Of a stretch of DNA of 64,000 nt, positions 16,162 to 38,017 are shown piece after piece. The notes beneath the pieces were generated by a model. That model searched no databases, was not told the origin of the DNA, and saw only the letters and a list, made by a program, of their open reading frames with translations. How positions within the stretch are numbered: the stretch's first letter is position 1; each line of letters starts with the position of its first letter. The translations under genes were made by a program, and so were the position numbers. The DNA comes from Magallana gigas (Eukaryota): NCBI RefSeq assembly GCF_963853765.1, contig NC_088855.1, forward strand, positions 35,712,001-35,776,000, read 5' to 3'.

Positions 16162-16306
16162 NNNNNNNNNNNNNNNNNNNNNNNNNNNNNNNNNNNNNNN
16201 NNNNNNNNNNNNNNNNNNNNNNNNNNNNNNNNNNNNNNNNNNNNNNNNNNNNNNNNNNNNNNNNNNNNNNNNNNNNNNNNNNNNNNNNNNNNNNNNNNNN
16301 NNNNNN
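16162..16306. other. Assembly gap (N run)
   Basis: Direct reading. Confidence 1.
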
Positions 16307-18952: not shown

Positions 18953-20977
18953 ATGGGGAGAACAGGAGGACGTGTGAAGATTGTGGCACTTGTTTTGGTT
19001 TTTCTGGTTGTCTGCACAGTTGTTGGAGTTGTGACATGGCATTTAACCAAGCATTCTTACCAAAAGGACGATGGAGCTAACTCAAAGAAAGCTTCGTCTG
19101 GATTACAGCTAGGAGACACTACTGTCGATGAAAAGCTAGGTGTTAACATTAAACGAAGGACAGAGAATTTTAACGTTTTGACAGGTCAACTTTGGAGCGA
19201 CCCGACACGTGAAAATGTAAAGCAATGGACAAAATCGAGCGACAATAAAGGAATCGCGGAATGGTCACGTGACCGGAAGTTAGAGGTAACCTTCAAGGAG
19301 GAGGGTGGTGTCCCTTGCTATCGGATTGACTGGCAGGTGACGGTTGGTATGGAGACTGTACTGACGGACTGCTGGAATATCGGCGAGGCTCACTGGTACG
19401 GGGGATTTGAGGATTACTATCAGCCGTGGCCTCTAGAGAAAAGGTCCAAAAACTTGACGGCTTATGTTCCTCACGATTCGTACCAAAAACTACTTGGTGG
19501 AGTGCAAGAAAGGTTTTTCATTTCTTCCAAAGGCGTGGGTGTATACATTGAAGACGATGTGCCACTTTTCATAAGTATCAACGCTTTCAACGACAAACAA
19601 ATGTGTTTACAAGCTAAATACGTGAGGCACCCTTACCAAAATTTCAGAAGACGTCTTCCTTCACTCAGCTACCATATATGCGTTTCTGAAAACGTGAGAT
19701 TAATCCACGACTATATGATGAGAACTTTTATAAAACTCAGACCGACGGACATCCCTGATAAGACAATGTTTCGGAAACCGATATGGTCGACATGGGCACA
19801 GTATCACAAGGACATTAATGAGTCGCTCGTCTTGGACTTTGCAGATAACATCATCAAGAACAATTTTACCCATTCTCAGTTAGAGATTGACGATGACTGG
19901 ACTCCAAAGTATGGGGACATGGATTTTAATAATGTAAAGTTTCCTGACCCAAAATCTATGGTGAAGAAGCTGAACGATAAGGGGTTCCGAGTGACTGTTT
20001 GGCTGCACCCATTCTTCAACATTGATTCAAACGCTTTTATAGAAGCAGCCTCGAAGTTCTATTTGATCAAGGAATTCGATTCTCTACGACCTGGTTTGAC
20101 ATCGTGGTGGGATGGTAAGCTAGCAGGGATACTTGATGCAACAAATCCTGAAGCAGTGGAATGGTACTTAAACAAAACAAAGTTTCTTCAAGATACATAT
20201 AACATAAGCTCTTTCAAGTTCGACGCCGGCGAGGTGAACTGGCTTCCTTTTGTGTATTCTGCAAGTTTTGATATTCCAAGCGAATATACCAAACATTGGG
20301 CAAGTCTTGCTTACAAATCGGACACCTCAATTCGTCACCAAGAAGCTCGAGTCGGCTCCAGGAGTCAGGATCTACCCATTTTCATCAGAATGTTGGACAA
20401 AGACAGCAATTGGGATTACAAAAATGGTTTAAAAACCTTAATTCCCACGGCTTTGACTTTTGGAATTCTGGGATATCCCTTTATACTTCCGGATATGATT
20501 GGTGGAAACGCATACAACAGGCAGCCGGAGAAAGAACTTTATATCCGATGGATGCAAGCTAACGCCTTTTTGCCATCGCTGCAGTTTTCAATAGTTCCTT
20601 GGCAGTATGATGACGAGGTGATCAACTTGACCCGTCGATACATTCAGCTTCATGGCGACTTCACAGACACCATCATAAGACTCGCCAGAGAGGCAGTGGA
20701 CACTGCAGCCCCCATCATCAGACCACTGTGGTGGGTGGCGCCGACTGATGAGGCGGCGCTCACAATAGACTCGGAATTTCTCCTCGGAAACGATATTCTT
20801 GTAGCACCAGTTTTGGAAAGTGGTGCTCGGTCACGTGATGTGTACTTGCCGCCGGGACAGTGGACTGATGAACTAAGAGGGGGCATAAAACAAGGAGGCT
20901 GGCATAGAAACTACAGGGTTGAACTCCATGAACTCCCGTATTTTAAAAGGAAATCTGAAATATTGGTATATGTGTAA
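18953..20977 (+). CDS. MYORG: Myogenesis-regulating glycosidase-like protein (GH31 family, type II membrane glycosidase), 674 aa, single coding exon
   Basis: N-terminal transmembrane helix (IVALVLVFLVVCTVVGVVTW). GH31 motifs PIWSTWAQY, LEIDDDW, FKFDAGE (nucleophile Asp), RMLDKDSNW (acid/base Asp), ILPDMIGGN, PIIRPLWW and YLPPGQW. A splice acceptor at 18923-18924 implies an upstream exon; a candidate donor is ACAG|GTAAGA near 16652. Confidence 0.9.
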   Translation: MGRTGGRVKIVALVLVFLVVCTVVGVVTWHLTKHSYQKDDGANSKKASSGLQLGDTTVDEKLGVNIKRRTENFNVLTGQLWSDPTRENVKQWTKSSDNKGIAEWSRDRKLEVTFKEEGGVPCYRIDWQVTVGMETVLTDCWNIGEAHWYGGFEDYYQPWPLEKRSKNLTAYVPHDSYQKLLGGVQERFFISSKGVGVYIEDDVPLFISINAFNDKQMCLQAKYVRHPYQNFRRRLPSLSYHICVSENVRLIHDYMMRTFIKLRPTDIPDKTMFRKPIWSTWAQYHKDINESLVLDFADNIIKNNFTHSQLEIDDDWTPKYGDMDFNNVKFPDPKSMVKKLNDKGFRVTVWLHPFFNIDSNAFIEAASKFYLIKEFDSLRPGLTSWWDGKLAGILDATNPEAVEWYLNKTKFLQDTYNISSFKFDAGEVNWLPFVYSASFDIPSEYTKHWASLAYKSDTSIRHQEARVGSRSQDLPIFIRMLDKDSNWDYKNGLKTLIPTALTFGILGYPFILPDMIGGNAYNRQPEKELYIRWMQANAFLPSLQFSIVPWQYDDEVINLTRRYIQLHGDFTDTIIRLAREAVDTAAPIIRPLWWVAPTDEAALTIDSEFLLGNDILVAPVLESGARSRDVYLPPGQWTDELRGGIKQGGWHRNYRVELHELPYFKRKSEILVYV

Positions 20978-22576: not shown

Positions 22577-23954
22577 TCAATTCAGAACTGCAAGAATATT
22601 TTTAGCCGTGTTCACACTCATGGCTACCCTGGTTTCGGCAGTGTTTGTTCCCATGTGTGGCAGAATCACACATTTGGGCTGTGTCAGAAGAGGATGGCCC
22701 ACCGGAAGTGGTTCCGGGTCAGTGACGTCCAATCCAGCAGCAGCGATTGTCCCATCACTTAATGCTTCAGCCAAATCGTCATGGTTCACTACGACTCCTC
22801 TTGATGTATTGATCAGAATAGACGTTCTCTTCATTCTTTGTAACAGTTTACTGTTCACCATTCCTTTGGTCAGTGAGTTGACTCCACAACAGATGCACAG
22901 GATATCGGAGGAGCTGAAGAGAGTGTCCAATGAGACGTACTGGGCACAGTTCTCGGCATATTCTATTTCCTCCAAGTCGTTATACAGAATGCGTTCCACT
23001 CCAAAAGGTTTTATCCTGCGAGCTATTCCGAATCCGACTCGACCGAATCCCAGAATCCCGATGGTTTTGTTGATCAGGCCAGAGCCACACAGCCAAAATG
23101 GTTTCCAACAATGAAACAAATTCTGGCGAATGGCATCAATTCCTGTAGATAAATAATAATGAAATGTTCTGTAATTAAAAACAATTACTTATATTGGCAT
23201 TATTTTGCTCGTTTCTTTGTTTCAAAAGGCACACCGGGAGTTTTTTAATTGCTAACATTCTAATGACCTAACTCGCTTTGAACATGACTGATTTAAACTT
23301 CTTTACCAATCAAATGGTTTGTCTTGTTTCTTGACGCTTTCTATTAAAACTTGATGTCACGGTAAACAGGCTCTTTACGAAAGGAGCTTCACTTGATTTA
23401 ATACTTAAAGACTGTTGGTTGGGTGAAAAAGAGAGGTTTGTCCTAAATATTTACTTTTGTTCATTAGAAAAGCGCATTCGAAATCAATTCTTGCATACCT
23501 TGGACAATATTTCTTGACGTCATCAGTATCAATGCCACAGCGATGTCTGCAGCTGCGTCGGCTGCGATATCCGGTGTCTTGCAAACCTCGATCCCACGTC
23601 GGCGGCATTCGGCGACGTCAACGTTGTCCCAACCGGCAGACATGGTCGCCACTACTTTCAGCTGTGGTCCTGAAAAGCAATTCAAACATGTGTAACATAT
23701 CAAGTGAGATAACTCTGTCTATCTTCATTGCAAAAATCAATTCCGTATTAAATACCAGCAGCTTCGAGAATCCCGGCATCGATGATATCAGACACCGTAC
23801 AAAACAGGGCAGAAATGCCCCCCACAGCTGTCAAAAGAGTTTCCTTCGGAATAGGTTCCTCGCTGTCCCATATTTCCACTTTATATTTCTGTTTAAGGAG
23901 AGCTATCGCTTCGTTCCCGACTTGTCGTGTTATGTAGACTCTGTTTTCCGGCAT
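22577..23954 (-). CDS. GRHPR: Glyoxylate/hydroxypyruvate reductase-like D-2-hydroxyacid dehydrogenase, copy A (catalytic residues intact)
   Basis: Exons 23954-23756, 23669-23499, 23142-22577, with phase-1 GT-AG introns. Motifs: VYITR, TMSAGWD, WKPFWLCG, Rossmann GFGRVG, INTSRG (Arg), LDVTDPEP (Glu), ILPHMG (His). Confidence 0.9.
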
Positions 23955-26834: not shown

Positions 26835-27978
26835 GTGATTTTTATACTCCTTAAAAATTCTTTATAAATCAGGAAGATACGAGTAAATGGAACGAGTTTT
26901 CTATATACTTACTAGTACTTACTTGTGCACATGATATGCAAGCGTGATCAAGCCAGATCAAGCGTTGCAACCCTTTACCAGATGAACATTGTAGAACCTT
27001 GTACTTATATAGCATCAGCTCTCACCCCCTTTTTTCCAAACACATTATTTTTTTCGTAAATTTACATTTAGAAAAATGATATTTGGACCTTATTTAATTA
27101 TGAACACTTTGTACTCTAGATGCCCGAGAACATCCGAGTAATATAATTACAATTGTGAAGACATTTACTACGACGGCTCATTCAGTAAATCACGGACATG
27201 TACTCGGACTCTCTATCTGTTTAGTTCAATGCATGATGAGTCCATTCCATCATGCATGCGCTAAAGCTTATAGTGTGACCACCGTGTGGGCGATATCTAT
27301 ATTTAGCTGCACATGTATGCACTGAAAGTTCACATACCCCCCCCCCCCCCCCCCAAACTACGACATGGTGCAACTATGTAAAGGTTGTAACGTGCTTCAA
27401 GCGGTCAAACTCCTATGAAACAATTTTCTTCAGATGCGAATCAACGAAATAATGCCCCAGTAAAAAACTGCCCCTTCCCCAATACAACAGACGTCTAGAT
27501 GATCAGTCGAAGGACAAATCGATAAGAGAAGTTCGCTAAGGTGAGCCAACCTGCCCCAGTAAACCACGTCGACCCCTATGGTGTGACGCTATTACGTATA
27601 CTGCAAAAGTGTGCAACGGACATGACATGCACACCGATGCTGATCGCCAATGTGAATCAAGAGAAACTACACAGTCGGGCACCTTTTCATTTATATATTC
27701 ACAGGACACACTCAAACGACTTTTAACAAATTGTAATGCCAAAAATTGCTTATTTCTATGAAAAGGGTAACCCCAAAACACTAAAACTGATTAAATAGAG
27801 TAAAAAAAACATTAATACACTAATTTATTTTTAAAAAATTAAAACTATATACAAAAGAATTACAGCAATGTGCTGTATATTTTTTATTCACTGGGAAGGA
27901 AAAACATTTTTAAAAAAAAACAACGATCATAACGTCTGTACATGATGATGACGGGAGGAAAACCCTACACAGTTTCTA

Positions 27979-30890
27979 TCACCTCTCTTCCTGCTCTGAA
28001 TTCCTGCCAAGCCGCAACGCAGAAACTACAGCTCGTGCAACTGATTCTGATGCAGCACTGCGCATGTCCCAAGTGTGATTGCACTCTTTGAACGGGAAAT
28101 AGTAACAATTGTTGAGTGCAGACAAATTTGTCTTAAACGGATGGGTTCGATTCACGTCCCTCACATCAAGTCCTGCTGCACAAATTCGTTTTTCCCTCAA
28201 AGCATTGTAGAGATCGGAATAGTTAATTGCATGTCCATTTGAGTAGCTGTCAAGCAATATGGCGTCTTTCTTCATTTTCTTAAAAGCGTCTTTTTGAAAG
28301 AGATGTGATTTTTGCGTCAGTGCTTTACAACAAATGCAAATGATGTCCGATTCTGAAACAAGTCGTTCAAAGTTCGTGAATTCGGCACGTGACTGTGGGT
28401 TCTTTACGACACAGAGGTCATTGTATAGCAAGTCCTTGACCCCAAGGTCCAGGAAGCGCTGGGCCACTGCCTGACCAACATAGCCGTAACCGATGATCCC
28501 CACCGTCTTCTCACAGAGCAGAGGGTCGCTCTTTAAAGTGTTCGAGTTCAAGTCAAAGATATCAAACTTCTGTTGTTCTTGGTCTGTTTAAATAAAATTG
28601 TAAAGGCAATCAAACAAACATGTAGACGATGATTATCTTTAAAAATCAATGCCACTGTGGAAAATCCAGATACTTGCATACACTACAAATTATTTGATAA
28701 TTTACATATATATTGGAGTTTTTATTATTATTTTTTTTTTGTCTTTTTTTCGAGAGGATTTATAAGGCACTTTACATAATTATAATCATACTGCAAAGAA
28801 ACCCAATTCCATCTTTAGGAAACCAATTGAGTATGAACACATGCATACATAAAATATAAATCTAAATGTACATTGACTCGCGAGATAATGCGTGTTCACT
28901 TAGTTATCGCATGCAAAACAATATCTTATCCGGAATTCAGTTTGCTATCACTATAATGTGCCAAACTATGTCAGACGTGCAAACATTTACCTTCGAGAGT
29001 CTGACGAAGAATACCCATGGTTAAGTTAGCGACAGTGTCCTTAGACATTTTGGGTAAGGTCACCAGTTCGATCCCCCGTCTCTGACATTCTTCAACGTCA
29101 ATGTGATGTGTGTCTTCGCTAAGTGTGGCAACAACGCACAATCCTGACCCTGAAAGTAAAAAAAAAAAACAAGATACCAAATTAATTAAAAAATTTCATT
29201 CCGTGTACAGGTACATTATCTCATGTTGCAAAAGGAGAGAGTTGTTTTCCCCCGATCATGACGTATATGGACTTTGACCCCGAGTCTGGCCCTCTATCAA
29301 CAAACGTCAGACGAGACAATGTCCTTTTAACTTCTTTTAGGGTCAGGCTGCTCCAAGATCTGGGCGCCTGAGTTAGGTTAGTGACCGGGAAGGCATCGAC
29401 TCTTGCTTTATTATTGATCTTATTGCACAACAAAACCATATACCGTATTGAGTTCATTTAATGAGTGTAATTAAATCAAGAGCGAATCCATTAGTGAGTT
29501 AAAAAGGTTACGATGGTTGNNNNNNNNNNNNNNNNNNNNNNNNNNNNNNNNNNNNNNNNNNNNNNNNNNNNNNNNNNNNNNNNNNNNNNNNNNNNNNNNN
29601 NNNNNNNNNNNNNNNNNNNNNNNNNNNNNNNNNNNNNNNNNNNNNNNNNNNNNNNNNNNNNNGTGAAAGTATGTCAAGTTTAAGATATCAAAGTGCATCC
29701 AACGTTTACATTTTTTATATTCAATATGTAATAATTGGTCATAAAATGTGTCTTTTTTTAAATTCTTTTTTTTTATGGTTACAATTGCAAACTTGCGGTC
29801 ATTAGCTTTAACGCATAATTAACCAACAGTGCTACGATGGCGAAAAAATGTAGGAGAATAAATAGAAGATAAAAAGAATAGCAAAGTTAAAATTGTTTAT
29901 TCATAAAAAAGTATATCATAAACTCGGTCTGTTCCATCGCTACTTAACTATATAATCAATATTCGGATATTGAGACGGAGTAATTCGGTCATTCAAAATA
30001 ACCTAAATTGTATTAGCGATAAGCTTTATGAATATAAATAAAAACAAAGCGAGTGAATAGCAAGTCAATATAAATTATATGATTGGGATATCGTGACGTA
30101 GGTTTTATTGATAAGAATTAAGTCCAGAGTCCAACAACTAGTTGTTTACTGTCTGGGTCTTTATATGTGCATTAAAAAAGGTGTCAAGGCTATATTGCAA
30201 ATGCGCCTTGCATATGAATCAACACCTGGTTCAGGATGGGTTTTTTTTCACATAACAGAAATTTTTTTCTCATCAGCCAAGTAAGATCTAAAAAACAGTA
30301 TGTGTTAATTTCTTGGCATGAACTTTATTTGATTTTAATGCACTATATGTAAAATTTAAAGTATTCAGTGAACTGGTAAAAGAAAACACACACCACATGG
30401 ACTACATGACAGCTGAAACACGTACACAAAACGTCCGCACGTGGTACGTGGGTTGTAAAATTTAACTAATTTAACTATACAAAACTAACGCAACAACCCT
30501 ACAAAAACAATATTATACAGTACCCGATTACCATCACAACAAACTTGAAAATGTTTATTTAAAAATAAAATTTGGGAACTTACCAGCGGAGTTGATCACA
30601 TCCTTGTCGACGTGATCAGAACTTGTGCATAACAGCGCATTCACGCCTCTGACTCCAATCAACAGCTCTCCCCTGGGAACAGGGTCCGGACTTTCCCACA
30701 TCGAGATGTCTGCCACCTTCAGCAGAACATCTAAGCAGGATTGTGGGACATTGGACGTCAGGTAAACTCTACACCGTGCCTTCATGGTGCTCTGCTCGTC
30801 TCGATCTGCCAGGGCTCCGTCTGTTGTTGTTTGGGTTAGCTTCCGTGTGACGTCACATAAATAATAAGTCTGATTGGGCAGTTCTGACAT
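27979..30890 (-). CDS. Divergent GRHPR-like paralog, copy B: intact ORF, catalytic residues substituted (candidate pseudoenzyme)
   Basis: Exons 30890-30584, 29149-28991, 28583-27979. The GT-AG phase-1 introns sit at the same positions as in copies A and C, and there are no internal stops. It retains VYLTS, WESPDPVPRGELL, ALLCTSSDHVDKDVINSAG, GIIGYGYVG, SDIICICC, KMKKDAIL and AAGLDV. An alternative start ATG is at 30785. Confidence 0.82.
29520..29662. other. Assembly gap (N run) in intron 1 of copy B
   Basis: Direct reading. Confidence 1.
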
Positions 30891-33391: not shown

Positions 33392-36264
33392 CTATGCTTC
33401 AATCCGTCGTAGCACCTCCCCTTTCGGACGACCCTTGTTCAGTACACTTATGATATTTTCAGCCGCAATTTCTGCCATGCGGTTTCTTGACTCCCATGTA
33501 TTGCTCCCCATGTGTGGAAGTATGACGCAATTATTCAAGGTGAGTAATGGGTGGTTCATAGGAAGTGGTTCTGGTTCTGTGACGTCAAGCCCGGCAGCAG
33601 CAATTTGATCGGATGTCAAGGCTTCGTAGAGATCATCATGGTTGATGATTCCCCCTCTTCCGGTATTTATAATAATGGCAGTTGTTTTCATCTTCTGAAA
33701 CGTTTTCTTGTTAAACAAATGCCTCGTTTGGGGGTTCATATTGCAACATATACACAGGATGTCCGACTCTTTGACAAGATCCTCAAATTCAACATACTCG
33801 CCTCCAAAGTCCGAAGCAAAGCTTAGTTTCTGAACATCGTGATAAATGATCCTTTCGACTCCAAACGGTTTAATTCTTTTCGCTACTCCATAACCAATAC
33901 GACCGAGACCCATTATTCCGAATGTTCGTTTCTTCATCTCAACTCCACAGAGCCACATAGGTTTCCATTTCCCCCATTCGCCATTTTTCACCGCATATGC
34001 ACCTAGAAATGCAATTAATAATAAACCATTTATTATACTTGATACCTCTAAATACATTTTCTCACAATAAACTATAAATAATTTTACATTTTCAAACTTT
34101 TTAATGAACTCAGACGACAGGAAATCATGCAAAGATTTAAACATAGTCGTAGCCTTTAATTTAAACTGTCTTGATAAGTTCGAATGCAAAGTTATCAAAA
34201 CGACTATGAATAATATGACATTCTAAAAGTTTTATTTAATTCACATTCTTTTTATTATTCGTATCTAACTTTCTTACCAATGATGGGTTGCAATTTGAAA
34301 TATTTGTTTATAGCTTAACGATACCCAATACTAGTATGTCCTAACACTTAGTCAAGGAGGCTGGGTGAACAACAAGTAACCCATAAGGCCTGCCATATAC
34401 TTTTTAATATGATATTTTGTTTTACTATAAAGTATAATTCAGTAAAGAATATTTTAGTTTTAATCTGACCATTTTCCTATATCTCAATGCAGAGTCAATG
34501 CAGAGTTCTTAATTAAACCAGGGTAAATATAGCATAAATCCTCTTAGAGCACACCTTCCAGGAGCCTGCGGGCGGTGAGCAGGACCAGTGACACTGTCAG
34601 CTCCGCCACGCTGTCCGTCGATACGTTGGGTGTGTTTGTGACCGACACACCCCTCTCCTGACAGGCCTGGAGGTCGATATGCTCGTAACCTACCGACATC
34701 GTCGACACCACCTGGAGCTGGGGCCCTTCATAAACAAGAAAGCATATGACTAAAAGAATCAATTCCTATATTAGTATTCTATTAACATAAATACATGTAT
34801 TCGCGTTAGTTGAGAACAAAATATGGGTCTGAACAATTTGAAACATTATTGTCGATGTAAATACCATGTTGCAAAAATAATACTTCGATATTATACAGTT
34901 AATGGTTAGTTTGAGGATATCAAATCATTTGTTGGACTTGAGGACACAAATGTTGCCCAGATCCGAAGGCCGACGACAAAGTTCTTGTCTGAACTGGTTG
35001 AATTAATATAATTGAATTTCGTTCCAACTTTGGTTTGGTTTTCTTTCGGTAAGAACTGCATACAGGAAGAATATTTATAAGGGTATAATAATACTGTATG
35101 CTTCGCGTCTCACCTACATGTACAATATTTTACAACGCTTTGAAATGATGGCTATTCTGACTAATGACTATCCTTCAAAACAACAGTTGTGTTCTTTATG
35201 TTCTGAGAAACGCATATGATCTTTGAGTTATAAAGAACATTGAATTATTGTTTTAAATTCCAAACATCTTTAAACTGTATTATACCTGCATGGAATGCTT
35301 GGAGTGAACAGAATGTTATGAAAGTTAAATTCTTCATTTTGGGCACGTACGTATAAAAATTATGAAACAATATATAACAAAAGTTTGTTGGATCCAGGCG
35401 AGCTAAAAGCTGAGGTACGTATAGAGATCGCTAAGAAAACAGCTATTTTCATTTGATTCTTTATTATAAATAAGATGCTCATACACATTTGATATGACAA
35501 AACCCATCAGCATTAGGTTATAAAACATGCACCGATGCCGATACTAAAAGTCATGCAATTCTTCTCAATCGGTAATGTTGACTGAGAAATCGATATCTTA
35601 TATTGCATAGTTTATCCTTGCAACCGACCTCTACGTACACATATCAAGGTCGTTGGCTGGCTTTTTTACACGATCGTACGTTTGCCATTCTGGAAAATGT
35701 TGTAATTATAGGAAAAACAACGCGGGGGGGGGGGGGGGGGGGGGTGAGGCATCGCACAAGTTATTCAATTATTGAATTACTGTCCGATCTATATACATGT
35801 ATATGTATACCAATTATATGTAAATCTTAAAGCATACATGTACAATGTTTGCATTGTGACTATGGATTCCGAATTCTTTTTTTAATTTAAATTAACATGT
35901 TTTCGATATTTATTTGGAAGAGGAAAATTAATCGATAAATTAAAACCATTTGACGCCATTGATTGAGTATTTGTAAACGATAAATTACATGTAATAGTAC
36001 ATCACAGAGAATTTAAAATATTTTGGTAACTGAACATAATAATTAGTTGAATTAAACTTTACCTGCTCGTTCCAACACTTCTCTGTCAATTTTGTCGGTC
36101 AGCATGCACAAAATAGCATCCACACCCTTCACATTTTTCAAGAGGTCTTCTCTTGGTATGGCGTCATCACTCTCCCAAAAAGTTACGTCGCAGCTCGGCG
36201 TCAAAATTTGCGTCCCGGGGTCGGGGATTCTTCGCGTCACAAACACTTTAAACAGTTGGTTCAT
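33392..36264 (-). CDS. GRHPR: Glyoxylate/hydroxypyruvate reductase, copy C (most canonical)
   Basis: Exons 36264-36063, 34725-34555, 34002-33392. Motifs: KVFVTRRIP, STMSVGYEH, TPNVSTDSVAEL, WKPMWLCG, GLGRIG, INTGRG, LDVTEPEP, ILPHMGS. Confidence 0.93.
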
Positions 36265-36844: not shown

Positions 36845-38017
36845 ATATGTATGGTGTTCCGATGGGGCCACTTCGATCTTCGCACTTTCGCATTTAGGTC
36901 GAGGTGCGAGAGTGCGAAATTGCGAAGGCGAAAGTGCGAAAGTGCGAAGGTGCGACGGCGAAGGAGCGAAAGTGCGAAGATAAGACGGCGAAGCGCGAAG
37001 ATGCGAAGGCGAAAGTGAGAAGTTGCGAAGGCGAAGAAACGTTACTACTATCGCTCCTTCGCCATCGCAACTTCGCACTCTCGCCTTCGCATCCTCGCGC
37101 TTTCGCCTTCGCCTTTTTATTATTGTGGAGCTCTCTGTAGTTTACAGACAATTTTAGCTGTATTAAAGGACATATAAGGAAGACGATGAACTTTTTAGAA
37201 TTTATTTTCAACAGCCTGCGCAGATCCATAACTTTTTTCGGGGGGGGGGGGGTCGATGGATAATTATATTTGTCCGGGGGGGGGGGGGGTCCGAGACATA
37301 TTTTGGAGATATTATTAAATATAATTAATAAAAATAAATTTTCCGGGGGGGGGGTGGGATCCGGACCCTCTCTCCTCTTTACTGCATGTGTGAAGTTATT
37401 GATATTGAATTTTCCGGGGGGGGGGGGAGGCGGACCCCCTCTCCCCCTCTTAATCCATACATGAGCAAGGAGTGTCGCATAATGATATAAGAATGCATAT
37501 TACTGTGTTTGATCCACGGTTAACAGACAGCTGGTAAGTGACAGGAGTCTGAAAGTGCATATGTATACATTATGGCGGACATTACATTTTATGTGCATGG
37601 AGTATATAATGATTAGGCATAGCCAGCACTGGTTAACATATATGTCACATATATACACATAAAAATATTTATAAACATTCATAGTAAGCACAATGGCCTA
37701 GCGCATGCGTACCAATAATATGGATTAATCGGAAAACCTTGGCGAGTACGGTGCCTGCATCAAATTCTATGTAATCGACCGAGACTTTCTGAATGCTATC
37801 AAAAAAGGCGAAGGCGAAAGTGCGAAGTTGCGAAGGCGAAGGAGCGATAGTAGTATCGCTCCATCGCCTTCGCACTTTCGCCATCGCATCTTCGCACTTT
37901 CGCTCCTTCGCCGTCGCACTCTCGCACTTTCGCCTTCGCAACTTCGCACTCTCGCATCTTCGACCTAAAGGCAAAAGTGCGAAAGTCGAAGTGGCCCCAT
38001 CGGAACACCATAAATAT
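36845..38017. mobile_element. Fold-back/MITE with ~220-280 bp TIRs built from degenerate GCGAA short repeats
   Basis: Left ATATGTATGGTGTTCCGATGGGGCCACTTCG and right CGAAGTGGCCCCATCGGAACACCATAAATAT are inverted. Arms span about 36845-37120 and 37800-38017; the interior has G-runs. Confidence 0.8.

Follow-up and report, generated by a model that had tools for sequence, protein, structure and literature searches.

In a 64,000-nucleotide (nt) stretch of the Magallana gigas genome (RefSeq assembly GCF_963853765.1, contig NC_088855.1, positions 35,712,001 to 35,776,000 of the forward strand; hereafter the window, counted from its first letter), three genes related to GRHPR, of three exons apiece, lie on the minus strand. 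We refer to them as copies A, B and C and deal here with the middle one, copy B (27979..30890). We conclude, with a probability of about 70%, that copy B is an intact, maintained GRHPR descendant which acts as a non-catalytic protein that binds a nucleotide or another ligand. Existing annotation lists the gene as an ordinary enzyme (RefSeq XP_011446925.3, "glyoxylate reductase/hydroxypyruvate reductase"). A preliminary description of this DNA, made from the sequence alone, had taken copy B for a maintained, probably dead and NAD(H)-binding paralog, not a decaying copy, and this core proposal is supported by transcripts, by the ratio of nonsynonymous to synonymous substitution rates (omega, dN/dS), by intact alleles and by orthologs. 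Going beyond that description, we found that copy B is a member of an old, bivalve-wide clade and not a local oyster oddity.

Active-site and cofactor residues in copy B and its orthologs

Residue states were taken from a 35-sequence MAFFT alignment and a HMMER alignment to human GRHPR, whose numbering we use throughout, as fixed by alignment with 2gcg/2h1s. In copy B, the states at the sites concerned are:

29117-29115, minus strand: Val83 replaced by Glu, substrate loop, exon 2
29114-29112, minus strand: Gly84 replaced by Asp, substrate loop, exon 2
28491-28474, minus strand: GYGYVG (Gly160/162/165), kept, exon 3
28239-28237, minus strand: Arg245 replaced by Asn, HMMER and MAFFT agreeing
28167-28165, minus strand: Asp269, kept, exon 3
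28161-28159, minus strand: Thr271 replaced by Arg, exon 3
28152-28150, minus strand: Glu274 replaced by Asn according to MAFFT, or by His according to HMMER with a 3-residue insert, neither being acidic
28092-28090, minus strand: His293 replaced by Phe, exon 3
28086-28084, minus strand: Gly295 replaced by Glu, exon 3

Asn242 and Ser296 are changed as well, to Asp and Cys, and the WKPxWLCG loop, including Trp141, is swapped for a segment of variable length. More than 90% of D-2-hydroxyacid dehydrogenases (2HADHs) share the Gly, Arg, Glu and His, which bind the substrate core, the His acting as acid/base (PMC6303947). Measured against a competent enzyme, the canonical triad Arg245-Glu274-His293 reads Asn, Asn and Phe in copy B, the substrate-carboxylate loop with its small residue and Gly (Val83-Gly84) reads Glu-Asp, and the Trp141 loop is gone. 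The cofactor is bound in 2HADHs by the glycine motif, the beta-B Asp and an Asp-Val pair that contacts the pyridine ring (PMC6303947). All of these determinants are present in copy B, that is, GxGxxG, the beta-B Asp (in YND) and Asp269-Val270 (in GLDV), and Arg302 is kept too.

Several of these differences had been read in the preliminary description from a comparison with copy C, and the alignments bear them out. GYGYVG and YND, said to be kept, are both there. TMSVG was reported to have become TLSED, and S-V-G at the aligned positions 82-84 is indeed S-E-D; the change of INTGRGG to LDSYSNGH, with loss of the Arg, agrees with the Asn found at position 245 by both methods, and that of LDVTEPEPLP to LDVRDVNRTHP, with loss of the Glu, with the Asn (MAFFT) or His (HMMER) at 274. 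The change of ILPHMGS to YFPFKEC corresponds to Phe in place of His293, and replacement of the WKPxWLCG segment is likewise what the alignments give.

Orthologs of copy B were identified in C. angulata, C. virginica, Saccostrea echinata, another Saccostrea, Solemya velum, Mercenaria and Mactra, together with three related Logan transcripts and several other transcripts. A maximum-likelihood tree unites the 13 full-length B sequences in a single clade (support 100/100) on a long stem (0.66). The clade spans Protobranchia (Solemya), Heterodonta (Mercenaria, Mactra) and Pteriomorphia. This clade nests in a molluscan group, again supported by 100/100, together with an A-type clade that includes Haliotis cracherodii and a C-type clade that includes Haliotis rufescens and Patella; the tree does not settle the order of the three. 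Because of this placement in the molluscan GRHPR tree, copy B is, as judged from sequence, a GRHPR by descent, and the B lineage is at least as old as the bivalve ancestor. Word-index searches returned no B-like protein from gastropods or other non-bivalves, though they did recover canonical GRHPRs from gastropods at 37-38% identity.

Within the B clade, the former catalytic and substrate positions are occupied as follows:

His293: Phe or Tyr in every member, full-length (13) and partial, interchanging even between the two Saccostrea
Val83, Thr271 and Gly295: Glu, Arg and Glu, respectively, in all
Asn242: Asp, except in Solemya
Arg245: mostly Lys; Arg in a single subgroup; Asn confined to the Magallana lineage
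Glu274: Asn (oysters), Gly (one subgroup), Asp or Glu (heterodonts and Solemya)
Position 84: Asp, Asn, Leu or Gln

The substitutions to which the preliminary description had drawn attention thus recur across Bivalvia. Since Phe cannot donate a proton and Phe and Tyr vary freely, there is no conserved acid/base at position 293. Every full-length oyster B sequence has intact cofactor motifs; in two partial ones from oysters, position 269 is Asn. A degenerate glycine motif was found in two heterodont members (Gly162 to Glu in Mactra; Gly162 to Asp, together with Asp184 to Gly, in one Logan transcript). At the 22 former pocket positions, pairwise identity within the B clade is 0.60 versus 0.46 at the remaining positions, a value reached by 28 of 1,000 random column sets; the same comparison gives 0.98 versus 0.69 in canonical C-type proteins. 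By this measure, the cleft of the B clade is one that has been rebuilt and then held, not abandoned.

Two candidate catalytic arrangements were considered and rejected. A shifted catalytic His could be provided by the His of NHTW or THP, but both are oyster-specific and not kept across the clade. A Tyr293/Lys245 catalytic pair as a conserved mechanism is contradicted by the interchange of Phe and Tyr, and of Lys, Arg and Asn, between close relatives.

Gene structure, expression and selection

The gene model of copy B comprises the following elements:

30584..30890, minus strand: exon 1; its first ATG, at 30890, is the RefSeq start, and the GT donor follows 30584
30786..30890, minus strand: N-terminal extension of 35 codons, lineage-specific and part of the RefSeq model
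30785, minus strand: conserved ATG, the start common to other species (MKARCRVYL...; orthologs begin MK[PAST]R)
29150..30583, minus strand: intron 1, GT..AG, phase 1, with a gap of Ns at 29520-29662 inside
28991..29149, minus strand: exon 2, encoding the substrate loop remodelled from S-V-G to S-E-D
28584..28990, minus strand: intron 2, GT..AG, phase 1, spliced out in transcript contig L001
27979..28583, minus strand: exon 3, encoding the NAD-binding domain and the C-terminal helix, with the stop TGA at 27981-27979
27884..27978, minus strand: 3' untranslated region, with AATAAA at 27888-27883; 27884 is the last position covered by transcript contig L001

The frame is open, with 356 codons from the ATG at 30890 or 321 codons from that at 30785 and no stops, and the three-exon join is identical to P0265, which is the M. 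gigas RefSeq protein XP_011446925.3. All six introns of copies A, B and C run from GT to AG, lie at the same two positions and are in phase 1 throughout. Copy B shares 33% protein identity with copy A and 37% with copy C; copies A and C share 48%. The preliminary description had noted three exons with canonical splice sites at paralogous positions and no stops, along with deep protein divergence, and every part of this stands.

Homology searches of copy B were run per exon, and P0265 later stood for the joined sequence. Pfam assigned PF00389 to exon 1 (weakly, 0.0073) and exon 2 (6e-06), and PF02826 to exon 3 (2.5e-26). This last match, to the C-terminal 2-Hacid_dh_C domain, is weaker than those of copies A (8e-47) and C (2e-53). 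The closest solved relative of exon 3 is human GRHPR (2gcg/2h1s, 1.3e-21), with CtBP chains following at about 1e-9.

At the stop site (27979-27981), some M. gigas alleles (P0267, P0277) differ by a one-residue stop-codon polymorphism: the first stop, TGA, is read as Trp, so that the protein ends ...EERW, and the adjacent TAG ends the frame.

The run of Ns at 29520-29662 falls within intron 1 and touches no coding frame. No coding exon is hidden in it, because the RefSeq protein equals the three-exon join, because a sister-species mRNA (L012) joins 30584 straight to 29149, because the same three exons make up the S. echinata ortholog, whose intron 1 measures about 1.3 kb, and because C. virginica, Saccostrea and other orthologs align without gaps across the junction. 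A second assembly gap (145 N) is located at 16162-16306, outside copy B.

Expression and splicing were assessed in assembled public transcript contigs (L001, L007, L008 and L012). L001, 98% identical and from the same species, covers 29424-28991 followed by 28585-27884, with intron 2 removed exactly; its positions 1-284 (29424-29150 of the window) keep the last ~275 nt of intron 1 in this intron-2-spliced molecule. In L012, a 1,512-nt mRNA contig of the sister species with ~91% nucleotide identity, the aligned segments are 31029-30583, 29150-28991 and 28585-27918, and exons 1, 2 and 3 are joined directly at the predicted junctions. Full-length spliced mRNAs were also found for a Saccostrea species (L007, 308 amino acids (aa)) and a more distant bivalve (L008, 321 aa). 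The preliminary description had named the spliced transcript and dN/dS as checks on its proposal, and a ratio near 1 with disrupted alleles in relatives as evidence against it. Spliced transcripts are present in several species, and the other points came out in favour of the proposal, as follows.

Comparison of the window with L012 over the 321-codon core gave a dN of 0.043, a dS of 0.200 and an omega of 0.22 (bootstrap 0.13-0.35; 0 of 500 replicates reach 1). Against a species with 75% identity in protein, probably C. virginica, exons 2 and 3 yielded an omega of 0.08-0.15. For copy B against S. echinata, dN was 0.19 and omega ~0.11 with dS saturated (>1.5); the corresponding values, with dS again saturated, were 0.11 and 0.03 for copy A and 0.10 and 0.04 for copy C. 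Because of this saturation we relied on the closer sister-species comparison. Protein evolution of copy B is ~1.7-1.9 times faster than that of copies A and C; that is, copy B changes faster than its siblings yet is clearly constrained by purifying selection.

No disrupted allele was found among the M. gigas sequences read. Of 12 M. gigas cluster members read, all ten that cover exon 3 are intact to the normal C-terminus, and the remaining two are reads of exon 1 running on into intron 1. P0278, an old GenBank protein derived from C. ariakensis cDNA (AEF33404.1), is out of frame in parts of exons 1 and 2 relative to all others, and intact full-length mRNAs are known from closely related samples. 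Taken together, copy B has lost its catalytic residues in a gene that is intact, expressed and under purifying selection, as is characteristic of a pseudoenzyme.

The N-terminal extension is of a different kind. Its ATG at 30890 is the first AUG in L012, where the 136-nt leader is free of ATG, as is the equivalent stretch of the window. Between the window and the sister species, the extension differs by 8 nucleotides and 7 amino acids with a dS of 0, and it is absent from C. virginica (P0292), Saccostrea and all more distant orthologs. In the predicted structure of the M. gigas protein, residues 1-36 have a predicted local distance difference test score (pLDDT) below 50, that is, they are predicted to be disordered. 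P0287, a Logan transcript from a sister Magallana-like sample, encodes 360 aa with a quite different 40-residue N-terminus and has no Met at the conserved start, so that even close relatives seem to differ greatly in this tail. Thus, the possible 35-residue extension of the preliminary description exists in the RefSeq model and starts at the first AUG of the sister mRNA; it is neither conserved nor visibly constrained. Probably it is a lineage-specific, unconstrained and disordered tail, or 5' untranslated region if transcription starts downstream, and the conserved copy B protein, going by its orthologs, begins at 30785.

Function of the copy B protein

Going by its residues, copy B would very probably be incapable of the canonical NAD(P)H-dependent reduction of 2-oxoacids. 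In oysters, we consider it probable that it still binds NAD(H), which would be held through the kept cofactor motifs. The remodelled, more acidic cleft would then be a binding site and not a catalytic one, and copy B would act like other dead members of the 2HADH fold, binding a nucleotide or ligand. Glu83, present in every B member, takes the place of a residue that contacts the carboxylate of the substrate through its backbone amide. What was a carboxylate site built of backbone amides and Arg may have become a site lined by Glu83, Asp84, Asp242 and Glu295, with Arg271 and Lys/Arg245. This acidic cleft could be read either as an internal salt-bridge network that fixes the cleft or as a site for a non-anionic ligand or partner. 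A protein that lacks the His and has been kept across clams, oysters and Solemya for about half a billion years therefore presumably does a different job.

AlphaFold2 models of the S. echinata ortholog and the M. gigas protein were built with family alignments. Both are confident two-domain models. The S. echinata model has a mean pLDDT of 87 and a predicted template modelling score of 0.79, and its top Foldseek matches are human GRHPR 2h1s/2gcg with template modelling (TM) scores of 0.72-0.74. The M. gigas model has a mean pLDDT of 78, and its C-terminal tail falls below 50.

Among known systems, copy B most likely works most like ANGUSTIFOLIA and those members of 2HADH subfamily X4 in which Trp has taken over the His position, if analogy within the fold is a guide. 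ANGUSTIFOLIA, a plant CtBP-like protein, is a member of the 2HADH fold without catalytic residues that is kept for a non-enzymatic role (PMC6303947). Beyond the fold, however, no relationship in sequence was seen. The plant protein is the sister of CtBP rather than of GRHPR, and its long C-terminal region has no counterpart in copy B. In X4 (for example PDB 1qp8), His is replaced by Trp, an aromatic residue unable to shuttle a proton, and the Glu is lost (PMC6303947). X4 is nevertheless a separate prokaryotic or plant subfamily in which about half of the members are canonical (PMC6303947), whereas the His is lost in every member of the B clade. The corepressors CtBP1/2 use the 2HADH fold as an NAD(H)-dependent regulatory module and offer a functional analogy only, for a redox-sensor role; they keep the Arg-Glu-His triad and weak dehydrogenase activity (PMC6303947), and copy B, without the triad, matches them at only ~1e-9, as against 1e-21 for GRHPR. 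Animal GRHPR itself (GHRB subfamily) is the best match in sequence (1.3e-21) and structure (TM 0.72-0.74) and shares both Pfam domains and, through copies A and C, the three exons. Unlike it, copy B lacks Gly84, Arg245, Glu274, His293, Val83, Thr271, Gly295 and the Trp141 loop, and it evolves faster than copies A and C.

Several observations weigh against a non-catalytic binding protein. Most orthologs have Lys245 and about half have Tyr293, and in theory these two might make up a catalytic pair of the Tyr/Lys type; heterodonts and Solemya still have an acidic residue, Asp or Glu, at position 274; and it is equally conceivable that the invariant Glu and Arg newly acquired by the clade belong to a new catalytic centre. 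The broken GxGxxG of two heterodonts suggests that NAD binding is not universal in the B clade. Model confidence is low (pLDDT below 50-60) exactly at the remodelled Trp141 loop, the Glu274 loop and the segment replacing His293. The sole same-species contig read, L001, retains the 3' end of intron 1, which could reflect pre-mRNA, intron retention or an internal start. As regards the intactness of the gene, the one contrary item, the frame departure of P0278, is likely a sequencing error and less probably a defective allele.

Some of these points feed into the idea of an active oxidoreductase with new chemistry, whose acidic pocket (Glu83, Asp84, Asp242, Glu295, Arg271, Lys/Arg245 and Arg302) takes a different, for example cationic or neutral, substrate and which transfers hydride from NAD(P)H independently of His. 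In its favour, oysters keep the cofactor motifs, and the pocket, the best conserved region of the protein, has new residues that do not vary within the clade. Chemistry without His also has precedents: Lys serves in SERA type IIIK, and the formate dehydrogenase reaction involves no acid/base step (PMC6303947). However, position 293 toggles between Phe and Tyr and position 245 between Lys, Arg and Asn, which leaves no conserved proton donor at these two sites, the oyster-specific His near the site is not kept in the clade, and GxGxxG is broken in some members. We therefore hold such an enzyme to be unlikely.

The preliminary description had itself proposed a regulatory subunit that heterodimerises with the flanking copies A and/or C, which is a special case of the non-catalytic binding role favoured here. 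2HADHs are normally dimers in which Trp141 of one subunit lines the active site of its partner (PMC6303947), so a partner without Trp141 would shift specificity. The gene order is compatible with co-regulation as well. In Mactra antiquata, a C-like gene, B and an A-like gene follow each other on one strand, and in Mercenaria, B is followed by an A-like gene; the order C-B-A is thus common to oysters and Mactra, and the triplet is therefore older than the split between oysters and heterodont clams. Tandem duplicates, however, often remain linked without functional coupling, and in Solemya there is no 2HADH gene within 10 kb of B. The whole dimerisation/Trp141 loop, moreover, has been swapped for a variable segment modelled with low confidence, which speaks mildly against a canonical heterodimer. 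On balance, we regard heterodimerisation with copies A or C as improbable.

An ordinary glyoxylate/hydroxypyruvate reductase is what the RefSeq name implies, and human GRHPR is the closest match of copy B in sequence and in fold; with the Gly, Arg, Glu and His that are conserved in >90% of 2HADHs all replaced, we consider this very improbable. A recent unprocessed pseudogene that has not yet acquired stops or frameshifts might account for the deep divergence from copies A and C (33-37% identity), the part of intron 1 retained in L001 and the out-of-frame parts of P0278, but it is scarcely credible given an open frame, GT..AG introns, an omega of 0.08-0.25 in every comparison (0.22 for the sister species) with 0 of 500 bootstraps reaching 1, fully spliced mRNAs in several species, M. 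gigas alleles that are all intact among those read, and a bivalve-wide clade with orthologs intact in at least 13 full-length sequences over Protobranchia, Heterodonta and Pteriomorphia.

Public databases list this protein as GRHPR or "GRHPR-like", so that metabolic reconstructions and expression studies of oysters and clams would count a third glyoxylate/hydroxypyruvate reductase, which copy B almost certainly is not. Our search of the literature returned no paper describing the copy B protein. It joins the few non-catalytic members of the 2HADH fold on record (ANGUSTIFOLIA and part of X4) as a well-defined case. Being old, invariant at the remodelled sites and located beside two active siblings that serve as natural controls, it makes the reuse of a dead dehydrogenase cleft a directly testable question. 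More tentatively, we would picture the B clade as a bivalve innovation: an NAD(H)-sensing subunit that has tuned glyoxylate/hydroxypyruvate metabolism through hetero-oligomers beside active GRHPRs for ~500 million years or, alternatively, a His-independent oxidoreductase with a Glu83/Arg271/Glu295 pocket acting on a non-carboxylate substrate. Either version is speculative.

Neighbouring genes and repeats

The two genes that flank copy B are:

22577..23954, minus strand: copy A, exons 23954-23756, 23669-23499 and 23142-22577, 311 aa, canonical with Arg/Glu/His intact
33392..36264, minus strand: copy C, exons 36264-36063, 34725-34555 and 34002-33392, 327 aa, a canonical molluscan GRHPR with Arg/Glu/His intact

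In S. echinata, C (327 aa), B (310 aa) and A (313 aa) are found in the same order and strand arrangement as in the window, and the triplet is followed, exactly as in the window, by a GH31 gene on the opposite strand. In the window, an uninterrupted open reading frame (ORF) of 674 aa with an N-terminal hydrophobic segment is present at 18953-20977 on the plus strand. Its S. echinata counterpart (L002, 17785-19791; 668 aa), which lies on the strand opposite to the triplet, carries Pfam GH31 domains.

Just upstream of copy C, two tandem arrays with repeats of 8, 22 and 30 nt are located at 36902-37112 and 37856-37956, ~750 nt apart. Their units, GTGCGAAA and TTCGCACT, are reverse complements of each other, and the two arrays may be the arms of a fold-back element. 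They yield long spurious ORFs on both strands.

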